Origin: Auanema rhodensis
Taxonomy: Eukaryota > Animalia > Nematoda
Length of the DNA stretch: 64,000 bases
Assembly: GCA_964057225.1 (NCBI GenBank)
Contig: OZ059897.1
Location: 8,866,001-8,930,000 of the forward strand
Direction: 5' to 3'
This document shows positions 7,113 to 60,181 of the stretch, piece by piece. A program made the translations under genes and the position numbers. Below the pieces are notes generated by a model. It worked only from the letters and a program-made list of their open reading frames with translations. It ran no database searches and was not told where the DNA came from. How positions within the stretch are numbered: the stretch's first letter is position 1; each line of letters begins with the position of its first letter.

Positions 7113-9105
7113 AGAAGAATCTGAGGGTGTTGTGTCTGTCTATGTTTTTTCAAAGAAAAAAAAGAGCAGAACGTTAAAAACACATAAGTTTAAATGAATA
7201 ATATATATTATGAGCAAAAAATAGCTCACAATTACGAATAAACAAAATATTAGGATTATAGAAGCAATATAATATTTAAAATTTTGGAAAGTTCAGTATT
7301 AATTGGTCGGAATTATCAATATTAGTGACTTTGAGGTCATTGAAATTCTTATCAGTCTTGTGGCATTACTAGACAGATAACTGTGGACAATCAGTTGAAG
7401 TTAAATACGCCCTGAGGGAGTTGAAACAGATTTATAGGATGAGCGGAAAGAATGAGGATGTACTTAATCATTCCATTGTCTCTTCTTCCGGCTTTTCCAT
7501 ATTCAGTCATGACCAGCAGTCAGAATGTTCAGGCAAATAGCTGAATGGGCAAAGAAGACATGATGAAAAACGTTTTTTTTCTCCAAAAATTACCATTGAT
7601 GTGACAAGATATGATAAATATGTGTCAATACCCTAAGGGATTGGCTTATATTTGGATGAAAAAAGTAAAAGACAGCATATAAAATGAAAAATATGCTTGT
7701 ACTACGTAAAAAACAAGCAAAATAGACTAAAATCACATACATGCATACATATCATGTAGCATGTAGGTCAGGTTCAAATGTTTCATCGAAAATAAAAATG
7801 AAAAAAGAGTTTTAAAATTGAAACGGAAAACAGAAATGTTTCAGATTAAAGAAGAGAAAAAATGGATAGAATGATAAAATAAAATTAAAACATTTGTATT
7901 GTCTCTAGGTTATAGAAAGATAGTAACTATTGACATGCATAGGATGGATATAGAAGAGAAACTGCGAAACTTTAAAAAAGAAAAATAGAGAATCAGAGTA
8001 GAAGAATAGGTGAGACAGCGAGATTACATAAAATTTGTGACGCTCATGTAATTACAGTTCGCCAAAGCTAGTTGCCCCTCGGCTATTTCTCTGGAAAGAA
8101 CACCAAGAAACTGTTGAACTGTGAGAGAAAAAGAATATAAAAGTGGGCATGGGATCATTGAAATAAAGAGAGACAGATAGAAGTGGTAAGAGAGGGGAGA
8201 AGAGGACAGAGAGAGAGGGAGAGGGAGAGAGAGAGAGAGAGTGAGAGAGAGGGAAAGAAGAGCGATTAGAGGGTTGAAAGTTGGGTAGACGAGGCAAAAC
8301 AATCACACAGTTCACACTATTACCGGTTTTCCGACCTAGTCCCGTTGATCAACTTCCACGAGACAACATACGAACACCATAGCCAGCTGATGCTGGCAGT
8401 TCTTGTCGTTGAGACAAGTTAAAGTTTAAAAAAAGTGAATATATAGATAGGAAAAGTTGTGCAATAAAGACTAGCAATGGTGCTGTTCAATAAACGATAT
8501 AATCCTACTGCGCGAATAAAAAAACACAAGTCAGCCATGGATGAAGTGCATTTCGAAACAAAAAAAAACATCAAAATGATGCTCGTTTCAGCATTTCCCA
8601 ATGCTGACCGTAAATGGAGAATCAAATATGCAAATTTCGAATTTCAAATGGGCCAACTGAGACTGACGATAGCTCGAGAAACAGGCACACAGAGAATGAG
8701 TAATGTGTTTGAGTCAATGATGAACCTGCTTGATGCGACTACTCTATCTCCCTATTGTCTTCAAGCAGTTAAACGAAAAAGAATAAAATAGAAAGAACTG
8801 TGAATATAGCTCTTCAAGAGAATCATCCTGTTCATTTTCTTAAAAAAAGATTCTGATTCACCGTATCATAAAACTTCATGTATCAGATGAAAGTAAAGAA
8901 GCATGCTAATGATGTTTTCTAAACAACAGGGTGTAAGTGAAAACTATCAAATACAAAAGAATATTTTGATAAATAATTATATAATACATCTAGTTTCTTA
9001 TTAAAATGAAAAGTTTATGAAAAATAAATAAATAAATTACTATAAGACGCATAATAAAGCTGATTAACAAAAACTTGTTAAAGTAGAATAGTATACATGC
9101 TTAGA

Positions 9106-52300: not shown

Positions 52301-53179
52301 TTCTGTACATGCCGGACTTTCATTGCAAAAACTCATGACATGACTTCGACTAATGCAGAACTTCTGTAAAAGAAAACAAAAGTTTAACAATGGGTTTTGA
52401 TCGAAAAACTTTGTTTTCAAACATGGAGGGAAAATAACACTCTAGAATTTATATAATGATATCGTCGTTGTCAACAAGCATAGTACTATTTTCACGTAAA
52501 TATCAAGTGTGAGCATTTAAGACAAGTCGTAACGCCGGCACGGTTGTTTCCTTCAATGCAATTCAAAGAGTCAGGTTTAATTTGGTTTCTCTCATCATTT
52601 TGATAAAGTAGTAGTAAGTTTTTTTTAAATACATAATCCAAATTGATATTTTATTCTCCAAAACAATTCTATCATCTCTTTTTGAAAATACTCCCATGAT
52701 AGATAACTTTTAAGACTATTGTGCCCATTTTATATATTATCATACGTATCTAACAGTAGAGTGAATAAATTCATATTCATAGGTTCATATGAAGAATATT
52801 TACGATAACCCTAATAACACGAGTTCAAACTATTTTTTTTTCAAAGTCAAAGAGAGTTCAAAGTGAAGAGATGAAAAAATCCCAAATTAGGTTTTTGTGG
52901 AAATTCAAAACATTTTAAATTATTAGCTCATGTTTTGAGATGATTGTTAATCGCTACTGGCATAAACAATATCATATTGTTCCTTTGAAAAAAATCTAAA
53001 GCTGAGATGAAACAACAATTGATGTCCTTTAATTTTTTCAAGTCCGCAGTTTTTCCACTTTCAAAATCAACTATTCTAACAATATCTAGGAAAAAGCAAA
53101 AATTTTGAAATGACATTTACAAAGAGGAATTCACAGAAATTATGATATAAAAAGCCCTATATTTAAAACAATTTATAAA

Positions 53180-56100
53180 TTAAATTTGACTTTCCTGCGA
53201 ACATCTTACTTCATCGGCAGATTCTGCAATTGCTTCAGCTTCTGCAACACCTCGCAAAAGACTGGTACGAACATCCCTGAAAACATTGTTTCTACCGTTA
53301 GACCAAAACCCCTTACTTCAAATATTTTTTCATAGCTTCATCTGAAGCTGTTCGACTCATCACGACTCCTTGTCGAAGTCTATGAGCAGTTCGTACTAAA
53401 ATTCGCCTCAAAGCAATTTCAGATGTAATCATTCTAGAATTTATGAGCACAGGTTAATATTATAGCTGCTCCTTTATTTACCTCTTGTTTTCACATTCTG
53501 CTCTTAAGGAGACAGCTAAATCCCTAGCTTCTTCAGTAACTGATGGTGGGAACGTAGAAAGTTGAACTAATTCGAATCCTTAACAAAAATATTTGAAGAT
53601 TTAACATCCCAATAATGTCATTTTCCCAGGCATTCATTGATCATGTTGAATATCTAGGATGATCACTTTAAATGTTCACAATTTATTTTGCCATTAGCAA
53701 TACTCAGTTGAACTTTGGTCACGAACTGTTCTTGGCAAATAATCACCCAATATAACTATTTTACAGTCATAAAATCTTGCCTTTAGCGGGTCATTTATTA
53801 CTTTCGGCTACGAAACTTTACAGCCGCTTGGTAAACTTTCATCGATTGCTGAAAATAGCACCTTAGGGGGTAAGGCGGTATACCTTAAAGAAGGCGGAGC
53901 CTTGATTACGGTATCTTTTCCATTGATGTAAGTCAATTCAAACACTATTTCATATCAGTTAGTAGCTTCTGCGTTCAGCAATAACAACATGGCGTCAAAA
54001 TCCAAATCTTTCCATAGACCCACAAAGGTGTGTTTTGAGCTACTTTTATGAATCGGTTTTTGTTTTCATTTTATAATTTTTTTTTGATTTTCAGCCAATC
54101 TGGCAACGGCCTAAATTGAAATTAACTAATTTATCTCACGAATGTCCTTATTCACCCTCAGGTTCTACCCCAGAAACGCCATCATCTACAAACGGGAAGT
54201 TTTTTGGATTCATTAATTTTGATGATATGGGTATAAATGTTAATGAAAAAGTAGTGATATTATATATTTTCTTAGATCAGGAACATCTGAATAAATCATT
54301 TTCTCTATATGATTGTGGAAATTTTGAAGCTGGATCATTAGAAGTACTGTTCTCTATACTTCTTTAACCACATGAGTAAATTTAGGATTCAATGGAGGAT
54401 GATGTGTTCATGATGGATGAGCAGTGTTCAACTCGGAAGAAGAAAGCAGGTCCTTCAAAGCAACATTTGTATATTGTGAATTCACCATCGCCAAAAAAGA
54501 TGGTAAGGCAGTTTATTTGTTTATTCTTCACAAAGTCAAAACACATAGGCTTTTCTACCACCTCCAAAATCTATACTAGTTCAACCTGCACAACAGTACA
54601 CTGCAATATCATCTGAACAATTAAAGCGTCCTAAACCTATACCAAAGGTATGTTCAATAACTTGTATTAGAAAATATTTAAGACGTTTTCAGTTGCATAG
54701 AGGGCGTGCTACATCTGACACAGTTCCTATTGTTAATGCATCTGAGAAGAATTGGTTAAATACTGAGAAACAAAGAGCACGTTCCAAAACTATTTGTGCT
54801 CAAAAAGAAACCCGAAATAAGAATAATCCCGTAGAGACTAGGAGACAGCGTTTTGATAGTACAGAAATGGAAAGTAATGTGAGTATTCGTAAGAACGAAC
54901 AAATTGAATCAGTGAAATTGTTTCTAGAACCTGTGTGCTTATTGCAAAAGTATAGGCATGGATTATCAGGGTCATACGAAACAGAAGTGCCCACGCATTG
55001 AAATTTTGGAACCATGTAAGCTATGTGGCGCTGCTGGATATGATAATCATACAATGACGTAAGAATTTATAATCCCACCCCTCAATGATTGTTCATCCAC
55101 TTTAGGCACTGTCCAAGTTCAATGAAGGTTACTTTGAGGTTGGATCCTGCCTTTTCTGCTCGGCTAGCTATTGCACAAAGAGCAAGAAATATAGCATTTT
55201 AAATTTGGAATGAAGCAATAATCTTGTGAATTTTAATAATTGATCCTGTGAATAATAACTACTTTGTATAACCATATGATGGTTTTCTGTCTTGTACACA
55301 TTTTGGAATGCGAAGATTTGATTTACTTTAAAATAAAATATTTACTCACCGTATAATGGTCCCGTGTATGGTCCTTTGTAAAGCTTATGGGTTGTATCCA
55401 GTACTTCATCTCCATCTTCGGTTTGTTGTACCTGTGGGTTAAAGTGGAAGCTGAAACAATTTTTAAGAAAGAAACGTTAAAGTTGAAGAAAGATTCACAC
55501 TTTTCTACTGCCGTGTAACGAGCATCAAGAGCAGACACATCTAGAAAGTGAGTTGCAAATATGGTGAATGCCTAGAATTGGTAGGTATATAGCATGAACC
55601 ATAGAAAATTACTTCTTTACGCAGCAAATCTTCAGCTATGGCAAAAGATATACTTATTCCCTCTTCGGTGGACGTACCTGAACATGGCAAAATATTTAGA
55701 GAAAAAAAGAAAGTGATAGCAACTTCTAGCTAATTCATCTATTACTATTAGAGATCTGCTGTCTGCATAATGCAGGATAGCAGCCATATCTCTCATTTCT
55801 AAAGCAAAAGCTGATAATGATTCAACTAGTGAATCATTGTGTCCCACCCTGGAGAAGATTCTGGAGAAAACTAATAACCAATTAAATGTAATTTTATAGC
55901 GTGGTATACCCGGAATAGTAGCATATTCCGCTGGAATAAGAGAGCCTGTTTGGGCCAAAATGCTCAATTGACAAACTTGTTTAAGATAGGTTGATTTTCC
56001 AGCCTACAAAAAATTTGGTTGCAATATTGGGCAGACTTTCACACCATGTTAGGACCAGTTATGATGGCAAATCTTGAGTCAACTGTTAAGTACTGAAAGT

Positions 56101-58508
56101 ATTATTATTTTGTCATTGGCAAGGTATTTTAAGGCTTACCGTGTCATTTGGTACTACGTTGTCGGACATCATTTGATCTAAAAGAGGATGTCGACCGTTT
56201 TTGAGTAAGAGAGAGGGACCGAATTGGGGACGTGCTAAAAAGTGAAATACATAAGAAATTACAAGGAAATAAAACTTGTCGTTGTGTTTGTAGCATATAA
56301 CGCTAAGCTACACAGATAATCACAGTTTGCCAGAATATCCATAACTTTATACAAAACTGGTATTAGGGAGCATATCTAAATTTCAGGTATAAATTTCAAA
56401 ATAGGTTCTGCCAGCAACTTACTTCTTCGGTAATATCATCCGCCACTGCTCCACTAGAGAACATAACTTCAGCAACCGATTGATTAATACGATCTAAATA
56501 TTAGGTTAGTAGACTTATTATACTTTACCAACTAACCATTATACCGGATGAGTGTTCGAGAAGTAAAAGTAATGGAAGAACGATTTCGAACTTCGTTAAT
56601 AAAAACCTGAATCGTATAGTTTCAATCACCCAGACGTCTTTGATTTAGTTTACCGAAGGTAGACGAGCTGTTGCAGCATTAGGGCAGACCCACAAATAAT
56701 GAAAACCTCTCGTAGCTGAATACGCTAGCCGCGTATTTTCGTTTGGCAAATATTTTTCGGTCTCCGTTGCTAAACCTCATTGAATTAATTCAACCGTTAT
56801 GATTGTTGCTTCGCACCTTGACTTTGAAGATCTTTAAAAAGCTCTTCGTATGCCTTCCTAGCTACATCTAAATTCACGCATGCACCTTCCTGAATTCAAA
56901 ATGAATGAAAGTAATTTACATACTTCAAATATTTTAGAAACCTTGATAGCATAGCATTTTTGATTTCTAACTGTTATTGAATTCCTTTTGTTTGTTTTTA
57001 ACACAGACGTATCTAAAGTATCCTGTAATAAGATAGATATTTTACTTAGGCGTTCATCTGATAATTCCTGTAACGCAAATTATGTTTATATGTTTATTAT
57101 TCAGTAACCTTTCTAATATTCGAAAGTAATTCGCTTTTCACATTTTCGAAAATTCTAGTAAGCATCTCAATCACGTCCAATGTTTGTTTCAATTTTAGAA
57201 GCTGTGCTCGTAAATAAGTTATGGAAATAAGCTCTTAGTTTATTCTCACCTGCATGATTGTATATTCACATGATTGTAAACTTTTTTCTTTAACTCTATG
57301 TGAGCAAACTGTAATAACGCTATCCAAATCATGTACTCGTGTCAAAACTTGTCGAAGCCGATCAAGTAACTGCAAGTTGACAGTGAAAGTGAGAAGCTTA
57401 AGGTTGCGATACGTGAGGATCGTCCAACAATTCCTCCACAGCATCATATCTTCTGTCTAAAACTTCTGGGTCAGCAGAAGGCTGTAATAGATTGCTCCGT
57501 AATAATCGTGCTCCACTATTGGTTATAGTACTGTCGATTAAAGATAATAAGCTAGTTTTTGTCTAAAGCACGAGAAATTAGAACGGTTGAAAACTAGTTT
57601 CAAGTATTTGCCTTTCCTGTCTTCGCGGCACCAATTTCATCTATAAGCTCTAAGTTCCTCCATGATCCAGCATCTGAAAATTCTGTGAAGTGATCTTAAG
57701 CAAGCATGTAGTTTCTACCAATCATGCATGATCTTTCAACATCCAAAAAAGAAAATCGTAAAGAATTGCCCATGAACAAAAGGTTTTGTATATGTTCAAC
57801 ATATTTGACTAATGCAGCACAAGCAGCCATTGCTAATTTTTTACTGAAATTTCAAATATTTTCAATGTAAAAATGACTGTTGAAACCGTTTTTGAATAAC
57901 TTTATAACAGTTGGATATTTCTTCATTTGCTAATTGTCGTATCAAGTTTACTCCTTTCTCTTCGTGAAAATATCTTGATAAAATCATGAGAAAACATTAT
58001 TGACAGACCCTTTTACCTCTTATGGACTGTGGTTATGGTTACTTCAGGTAAAGCATTTTTGAGTGCTTCGGTCAGCAATAACCCTCCAGTACGATCATTT
58101 AACGAGTCTGCCAATATGATCTTAAAATGTCATCAATTTGCTTATTTGAACTTTTATTTTTACTAACTTCCACAGGATCTTCTACTTGAATTTTTGTTTT
58201 CAATCGAGTATATGATGTTGAGTCAATGAATTCGTAAAGATCTATATTAGGTGTTCTAATATCCATAAGAGCTAAACCAACAGAACCACTGGTGAGACCT
58301 TTACCTTCGATAATACCTATCACCAACAATATTAATAGTTTTACATTCACCACAATTTACTTGCTATTGTAACAGCATAAAAGCTGCGTGTAGTGTTATT
58401 GCCAGCAGGCGTTTTGCTTCCTTTCGAGCTTGTCACTTCTCCGAATTTATATTTGGGCTGTGTATTCAGTGATGAAAAATCGACAGTTCCATTATTTGAT
58501 TTAGCCAT
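53180..58508 (-). CDS. him-14: MutS homolog 4 (meiotic crossover factor MSH4/HIM-14), multi-exon
   Basis: ATG 1 nt after a TTTCTAG acceptor; DAGSWRNLELI; SGARLLRSNLLQP; GRHPLL; Walker A ITGPNM|AGKSTYLKQV; FSRVGHNDSL...SAFALEMRDM; VIDELARSTSTEEG; FTIFATHF; GPLY|GFELVQLSTFP. Last exon ends ESQI* (53180), or, using the GTAAGA donor after ADE, splices to ILLE* (53071). Confidence 0.93.
53989..55202 (+). CDS. nos-2: Nanos-type CCHC zinc-finger protein (nos-2-like), 290 aa, nested antisense in the him-14 intron
   Basis: Eight exons 53989-54027, 54095-54230, 54276-54343, 54386-54502, 54549-54647, 54693-54878, 54928-55058, 55106-55202 (873 nt, all GT-AG, in frame). C-terminal CAYCKSIGMDYQGHTKQKCPRIEILEPCKLCGAAGYDNHTMTHCP is a double-CCHC Nanos domain. 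TTCAG acceptor at 53978. Confidence 0.88.
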
Positions 58509-60181
58509 TCTAGAAATTGAAAAATATTAATTAAAACCCTTTCAAAAATCTTTGAGACATTGCCTTTTTATGATTATATGCAACATTTTAAACTAACATA
58601 AAAGCTGACTTTCGCAACAAGACCATTTCGACCTTAAAAAAATTATGTTTGAATATACTGTTATTAAAAAGTTATTAGCAAACATACTCGAAGCATGATT
58701 CAGTATTGACTAATATGAAAATTTAAAAAGATGCTGTTATTAAGAATTATTTAGATAAACAGTTTTATTTTAATTCTTCTCCAACTGATTATAACATGAA
58801 GGAAAACCGTAATCATTTCTTTTTATTTTCACGTACTATCCGGTTGCAGCTCATGAACGTCACGTTTTTGAATTGCCATTATAAACTCATTAAACGGACC
58901 CACCTAGATTATTAGAAAATGAAAATGGTTATAAAGAACTATGACGGTGGTGATTAAAATTCTTTTTGATCTTTCGGCTTATAAAATACACAGTTCACTA
59001 TTTGAAATAGATCGTTTTAAATGATATGAAACCTTTTTTAAGTTTATGATGATGTAGTTCAAGATTCATATTGTTTGATCATCGATATAGCATTTGCCAT
59101 TTTCTTTCTGAATATTGTCATAGTTCTTGCTATATTGATGATAAGACCCAAAATGGCTTTTATATACAATCGCAACAAAATGGAAGACCATGTTTGAAGA
59201 GACATATATCTGAAATGTCTCTTCTATATAAATATAATAATTGTTAACTGCATTCTCAAAATGTAATAATATTTTTCAATCTAAAAGAGGAACTATGCAT
59301 ATATTCATTTTTTGAAATTTCACCTAGAAATTATCTCATTTTTCTGGCTTTCTCTCAAACATTCTCGTAATACACATATACTATTGATAGTGACTATTCA
59401 AATGCTTGTTAATCTTAACTGAATAAGTATGCATGTATCATCGAAGAAAGTTTAAAAATGTTCCATCGAACTTTAACAGCCAGCTGTCTTTAGTCTGAAA
59501 CTCAAGCAGACTTTGTTAATTAGGTCACAACTTCATTTAGTATCCTAAAGAACGAATATATTAAAAATATTTAAAAAACAAGAACATTAATCATTTTCTA
59601 CGAATAAGTATTAGTTATGAACTTCAGCTTGCAGCCCAAAAACATTTGAATCGAATACGAAACCAAATAATGATTTTGATAATGAACTGTAAAACAATAA
59701 AAGAAGTCCATGCCTTTTACTTTTCACTATCATCGATTGATTATACAATATTATAAAATTATGCTATCTTTATAATGAATGTTGCCTCCCACCTCTAAGA
59801 TATGGAAAGAATTCGAAAAATATTATTTTGGGCTGAACTATTCAATCTTAAATTCCGTATTCGCATCATTTTAATGATTATATATTCTTCTAAACATCTT
59901 ATCAATTTTCTCTCTATGAAAGGCAGTTACCATACTCTGTTCCATATATATATATATATTTAATATTTATTAAAATTACATTGGTCAACGCCCTTATACG
60001 GTTTAGTCAGCGCTTATCATACGGAAACAATATAATAATTTCTAGCTCATCTTAAATAAATACTCAATTTTATAATTTTATCAATGCTTATTTCGCAGAT
60101 TACGAATTTTATCAAATTCTTTTTTTCTGAAAATAATAATATTTTTTTGGAAATATTATGAATATTAATATTTCAGTTTGA

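Follow-up and report, generated by a model that had tools for sequence, protein, structure and literature searches.

The closest described system is the Caenorhabditis elegans pair nos-2 (ZK1127.1) and him-14 (ZK1127.11), a Nanos gene and an MSH4 orthologue. The ok230 deletion removes nos-2 together with a him-14 exon, and worms mutant in nos-2 alone are viable and fertile (PMC5734877). A preliminary description of the locus studied here had pointed to this pairing, with ok230 hitting both genes, and that paper supports it. An explicit statement that nos-2 is nested in him-14 was not found in literature searches, which returned the ok230 remark only. In the window, the 64,000 nucleotides (nt) of Auanema rhodensis contig OZ059897.1 that were analysed, the layout is alike: an MSH4 orthologue acts as host to a Nanos gene, the guest, which lies antisense within its single long intron. 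Auanema is a three-sexed model with unusual meiosis. The A. rhodensis locus is very probably orthologous to the nos-2/him-14 pair of C. elegans, both going back to one insertion of nanos that was kept by structural inertia and lost at least twice. The C. elegans layout was already known; the present result is that the nest would predate the split between Caenorhabditis and Auanema.

The long him-14 intron occupies 53579..55349 on the minus strand (1771 nt, GT..AG, phase 1) and splits a codon after GPLY, in GPLY|G-FELV. In the sequence, the terminal letters of the upstream exon, ...GGACCATTATACG, reach 55350 and are followed by the donor GTGAGT. The acceptor, ...TTGTTAAG, ends at 53579, and the downstream exon opens with GATTCGAA. 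RNA evidence was taken from Logan contigs of four sequencing runs (X1-X4) from one 2019 study. The runs carry the label 'RNA?' and are treated as spliced RNA because their contigs skip canonical introns. In all four, the joint 53577/8>55349/50 is found, which skips 1771 nt with CT..AC ends. The intron of the preliminary description, with its donor at 55349, its acceptor at 53579 and the split codon, is therefore confirmed to the base by sequence and by 4/4 runs. The exon on its 5' side (55350..55450, minus strand) ends in ...YKGPYTGPLY, is bounded by the joints 55450>55501 and 53577>55349 and is 72% identical to its counterpart in Auanema sp. JU1783. The exon on the 3' side (53483..53578, minus strand) begins with GFELVQLSTFPP, is bounded by 53433>53482 and 53577>55349 and is 82% identical to JU1783 (locus L001, 7836-7934). 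Six other him-14 introns are represented in the RNA contigs and all are 40-50 nt long (among them introns of 40, 48, 50, 46 and 41 nt).

It had also been claimed that him-14 continues past 55349 and owns the exons at 53180-53578, and the spliced contigs of all four runs bear this out. Several public gene models would suggest otherwise, since those of JU1783, C. remanei and C. auriculariae stop at the nest, as if the exons at 53183-53578 were another gene. The probability of such a separate gene is close to nil and the idea is already refuted: 55350 is spliced directly to 53578 in every run, and in an alignment with full-length HIM-14 from ten nematodes the exons beyond the nest match the conserved C-terminus (GFELxELSTFP...). 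At least five public genomes have a him-14 model that ends at the nest (JU1783, C. briggsae, C. brenneri, C. auriculariae and, for one model out of two, C. remanei). In JU1783 (L001 3001-8236) the gene is divided between a 749-amino-acid (aa) model, which reads into the intron, and a 98-aa gene that comprises the last three exons. Lengths of 761-774 aa are given to the models of C. remanei (GCK72_006414: 761 aa), C. briggsae and C. brenneri. The C. auriculariae model (locus L009, 4501-14112) has 729 aa, and the model downstream of it looks chimeric across the nanos gene. Such truncated MSH4 models miss a conserved C-terminus, and automatic annotation pipelines are affected.

The preliminary description had placed an eight-exon plus-strand Nanos gene in the intron. 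Eight coding exons are present and expressed, but the total is nine, with an additional exon in the 5' untranslated region (UTR). The RNA joints, refined on the sequence, define eight plus-strand GT..AG introns, the first four at 53911-53958, 54028-54094, 54231-54275 and 54344-54385 and the last four at 54503-54548, 54648-54692, 54879-54927 and 55059-55105. The reading frame runs from the ATG at 53989 to the stop codon at 55200-55202 and is open throughout (8 coding exons, 873 nt, 290 aa). The 5'UTR exon lies at ~53770..53910 on the plus strand; its joint 53909>53958 is present in X1 and X2, and its start is approximate, the length being deduced from a 1197-nt contig. An acceptor-like TTTTACAG site ends at 53766, just before this exon. 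The start-codon exon covers 53959..54027. It is followed, still on the plus strand and each supported by RNA joints and frame, by coding exons 2 (54095..54230, with a weak JU1783 match), 3 (54276..54343), 4 (54386..54502), 5 (54549..54647, 50% identical to JU1783) and 6 (54693..54878). Coding exon 7 (54928..55058) carries the first zinc finger and most of the second, with the first Cys codon at 54934, and is 80% identical to JU1783. The last coding exon (55106..55202) supplies the final His-Cys of the second finger (Cys codon 55110-55112) and the stop. The 3'UTR extends over 55203..55353 with an AATAAA at 55332-55337.

The 3' end of nanos abuts the him-14 splice donor, with contigs ending at 55313-55353, and at the other side ~190 nt lie between the nanos 5' exon and the neighbouring him-14 exon. 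Guest and host are separate transcription units on opposite strands, both spliced and expressed. Their spliced mRNAs co-occur in three samples (X1-X3), in which nanos is 5-20x higher by word depth (nanos contigs ~90-130, him-14 contigs 3-18). Two short conserved stretches were also seen in the nanos UTRs. In the 5'UTR exon (53888-53915, plus strand), a conserved GAAGGCGGAGC block precedes the splice donor and is common to JU1783 (L001 ~7520-7550, minus strand), the flank being otherwise poorly alignable. A second block, GAAG(A)TTTGATT, is conserved with JU1783 near the 3' end of the 3'UTR.

Exons were searched one at a time for host and guest alike, and the spliced sequence was checked by exon lengths and phases. 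The last two nanos exons together encode the pattern C-X2-C-X9-H-X4-C-X8-C-X2-C-X7-H-X4-C. Read from 54928-55058 plus 55106-55112, finger 1 consists of C3, C6, H16 and C21 and finger 2 of C30, C33, H41 and C46, so two consecutive CCHC knuckles stand at the C-terminus of the guest, as is expected of a Nanos protein. In an ESM Atlas feature search with exon 7, the nearest named cluster was 'Nanos-type domain' (score 0.86). A PDB sequence search with the zinc-finger exon gave no match. The finger pair and the Atlas cluster uphold the earlier identification of the guest as a Nanos gene. By homology, its product may be supplied maternally and repress translation in primordial germ cells. Like the canonical members of the family (Drosophila Nanos, vertebrate NANOS1-3), the guest is small, with a C-terminal CCHC finger pair and a poorly conserved N-terminus. 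The classic spacing of the Nanos fingers is X12, X10 and X7. The guest differs from it in a shorter first finger (X9, X4) and a linker of X8.

Nine him-14 loci from eight other species were compared with the window by mapping public proteins on the DNA and scanning all six frames for Nanos fingers. An intron after GPLY(G) was found at the identical protein position in every locus compared, across clades III, IV and V. What the intron contains is more variable. It measures 1771 nt in the window, ~1.7 kilobases (kb) in Auanema JU1783, 1306 nt in C. remanei and ~2.2 kb in the early-branching C. auriculariae, and in each of these a nanos gene lies inside it in antisense. In JU1783, 6/8 coding exons are colinear with those of the window. 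In both homeologues of Diploscapter pachys the intron is 43 nt long, in Ancylostoma ceylanicum 104 nt, in Mesorhabditis spiculigera 36 nt, in Bursaphelenchus xylophilus 34 nt and in Dirofilaria immitis 444 nt, and none of these holds nanos. A regular expression for the Nanos finger matched exactly once in each nested locus and gave no match in six-frame translations of ~70 kb of non-nested him-14 loci. The suggestion that the nest was kept over long evolutionary time is not supported across nematode clades: the nest is present in the same intron of Auanema JU1783, C. remanei and C. auriculariae, but not in Diploscapter, Ancylostoma, Mesorhabditis, Bursaphelenchus and Dirofilaria, with their empty introns of 34-444 nt. 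The accompanying premise of a species distant from Caenorhabditis did not hold, as the window is closest to Auanema JU1783, from the same family as Caenorhabditis. In D. pachys, a parthenogen, both homeologous him-14 copies are intact and have long introns elsewhere, and one copy is annotated with six isoforms.

The four guests (window, JU1783, C. remanei, C. auriculariae) share more than their location. All have the finger spacing X9/10, X4, X8. A phase-2 splice donor follows H-T-x-T in 4/4 guests, with the acceptor before (H/Y)-C-P resolved in 3/4, C. auriculariae being the exception. A phase-0 intron lies 0-2 codons ahead of the first Cys, again in 4/4. The two Caenorhabditis loci, as read, therefore resemble the window in the antisense guest in a long intron after GPLYG, in finger spacing and in the intron within the finger. 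They differ in other respects. The C. remanei guest seems, as read, to have ~4-5 exons, compared with 8 coding exons and a 5'UTR exon here, and the guest proteins of the window and Caenorhabditis cannot be aligned outside the zinc finger. The genes flanking the pair also differ between the window and C. remanei, while the nanos/him-14 pair itself is kept.

In the MSH4 tree, Caenorhabditis was joined by Diploscapter, and the strongylids by Auanema, with Mesorhabditis on a long, unsure branch. The topology is consistent with the species tree, and published phylogenies put Mesorhabditis (Pleiorhabditis) outside Eurhabditis (PMC13123947, PMC5593846). Taken together with the distribution of the nest, the tree puts the nested state on either side of the basal split within Eurhabditis, beside non-nested lineages. 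This patchiness, with the closest sampled relatives of each nested lineage devoid of a nest (Diploscapter for Caenorhabditis, strongylids for Auanema), would be expected if the lineages of Caenorhabditis and Auanema had each acquired nanos in this him-14 intron on their own, and a history of two gains takes fewer events than a single gain with two losses. Such convergence nevertheless appears very improbable. It needs the same gene to have entered the same one of ~24 introns in the same antisense orientation, and the two guests to agree both in their unusual finger spacing and in where the introns on either side of the finger exon lie. Loss is also easy, since deletion of nos-2 is tolerated in C. 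elegans (PMC5734877).

A single insertion followed by at least two losses is favoured because the host intron, the antisense orientation, the finger spacing and the intron positions flanking the finger are common to the nested loci. The him-14 intron after GPLY(G) would be ancient, as it occupies the same site in nematodes of clades III, IV and V, and it would be far older than its guest. The nanos gene most likely entered this intron once, before the Caenorhabditis-Auanema split. The nest may then have been kept by structural inertia, as ordinary rearrangement cannot move a nested gene without breaking its host. In the Diploscapter and strongylid lineages, nanos would subsequently have been deleted or relocated, hence at least twice. 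Losing the guest would have been cheap, because C. elegans remains viable and fertile when nos-2 alone is mutated (PMC5734877).

Several points weigh against this history. By event count alone, two gains (2 events) beat one gain and two losses (3 events). The absence of the nest in five genera rests on one assembly each. The orthology of the guests rests on position and gene structure and not on a Nanos family tree. In addition, the Pfam profile zf-nanos (PF05741) scores 17 bits (E=0.007) on 54928-55058 alone, with a cut-off of 27; the match covers profile positions 1-49 of 54, the finger being split over two exons. At 18.9 bits, the guest of C. remanei, a nos-2 gene judged by its position, is likewise below the cut-off.

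The him-14/MSH4 transcription unit as a whole covers 53134..58511 on the minus strand in ~25 short exons, and RNA contigs span 53134-58511. Its ATG is at 58508-58506 and its stop at 53182-53180. The GC content of the locus is ~32-37% and its short introns are typical of rhabditid nematodes; the A. rhodensis genome has a GC content of 32.2% (PMC6469403). The exon order of him-14 is colinear with the 22+3 exons of the JU1783 locus. A full-length path obtained by a minimum-intron dynamic programme (13 introns, open throughout) was discarded, as it reads through in-frame introns. On single exons within 53.2-58.5 kb of the minus strand, Pfam matches to MutS_II, MutS_III (E=5e-16) and MutS_V (E=8e-24) were obtained, and a Walker A motif reads ...TGPNM|AGKSTYLK, interrupted by an intron. 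The JU1783 orthologue contains PF05188, PF05192 and PF00488 and lacks PF01624, which the bacterial MutS matches have. MutS_II, MutS_III and MutS_V without MutS_I, as found in the named HIM-14 relatives, is what is expected of MSH4.

Exhaustive scoring against 1.84 billion representatives was used for the MutS_V exon, as exon-sized queries miss full-length proteins in a word search. The closest match was CAI4232721 of Auanema sp. JU1783 (80% identity), followed by the nematode proteins CRE-HIM-14 and BMA-HIM-14 and later by 'MutS protein him-14'. Word searches with JU1783 MSH4 and with a 14-species profile were dominated by bacterial MutS, and no protein of Oscheius, Pristionchus or C. elegans came up. 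A PDB sequence search with the MutS_V exon found chains of MutS, MSH2, MSH3 and MSH6 only and no MSH4 chain. Because of the MutS_II/III/V domains and the relatives named HIM-14, the host is, judged by its sequence, an orthologue of him-14/MSH4 rather than of MSH2, 3, 5 or 6. By homology, its product may serve as the crossover-promoting MutS-gamma subunit. For work on Auanema, a crossover gene and a germline nanos gene are thereby available as models at exon resolution. Deletions or CRISPR edits in one of the two genes can also strike its partner, and ok230 of C. elegans is an instance.

Shared regulation or mutually exclusive transcription had been proposed as the reason for the nesting. In its selective form, this means that the nest was favoured for functional coupling, either through a shared germline chromatin domain or through antisense interference that separates nanos and him-14 expression in time. 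Some observations agree with it. The pair survived in two lineages while flanking synteny was lost, the two genes are packed tightly (the nanos 3' end at the him-14 donor, ~190 nt at the 5' side), and both are germline-acting, as nos-2 and him-14 act in the germline. One run, X4, also has him-14 contigs and no nanos contig. Even so, selection for coupling seems unlikely. In Diploscapter, Ancylostoma, Mesorhabditis and Bursaphelenchus him-14 persists with an empty intron of 34-104 nt, and each of X1-X3 contains both mRNAs in spliced form, contigs being unable to show absence or expression level. Neither form of regulation is thus required for him-14 to persist. The minimal, empty intron of him-14 in four genera makes an obligatory coupling of nanos and him-14 unlikely, and mutually exclusive transcription at the level of samples is not supported.

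In X4, him-14 contigs flank the nest and include the 1771-nt joint, with no nanos contig; contigs cannot prove absence or expression level. The pattern fits a maternal or embryonic nanos mRNA that is missing from one sample type, e.g. males or larvae. RNA-seq data from L2 larvae, males and mixed stages of A. rhodensis were deposited with a 2019 paper (PMC6469403).

A third gene is transcribed antisense to him-14, outside the nest. Two non-coding plus-strand exons, at <=55883..56089 and 56134..56504, are joined at 56089>56134 over a 44-nt GT..AG intron that was seen in X1-X3 and not in X4. The contigs with this joint run unspliced through the him-14 introns over 56134-56504. A misplaced him-14 intron was considered for the joint and rejected, as the canonical him-14 intron at 56093-56139 would give a different junction sequence. 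At AG|GTTAGT (56504) the contigs continue with sequence that maps to 60177, so that 3672 nt are spliced over. Position 60177 follows TTTCAG, and the ATG (60182) with which the next plus-strand gene begins is 5 nt further on. A ~3.7-kb intron in a 5'UTR isoform of this third gene therefore encloses the 5' half of him-14. The antisense donor at 56504 is not obviously conserved in JU1783. A selected, interleaved germline unit of three genes, in which him-14 would be tuned by interference from the transcription of nanos and of the antisense 5'UTR isoform on the plus strand, is a doubtful proposition, slightly more so than coupling of the pair. If true, it would account for a nest that outlasted the reshuffling of its flanks in Caenorhabditis and Auanema.

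The downstream plus-strand gene itself extends over 60182..~63000 and encodes a signal peptide (MVKIVQLPLLLLLLC...) and several hydrophobic or membrane spans. Ten exon pieces gave no Pfam match. The gene, which has not been called in Auanema JU1783, is conserved there (L001 69-1638).

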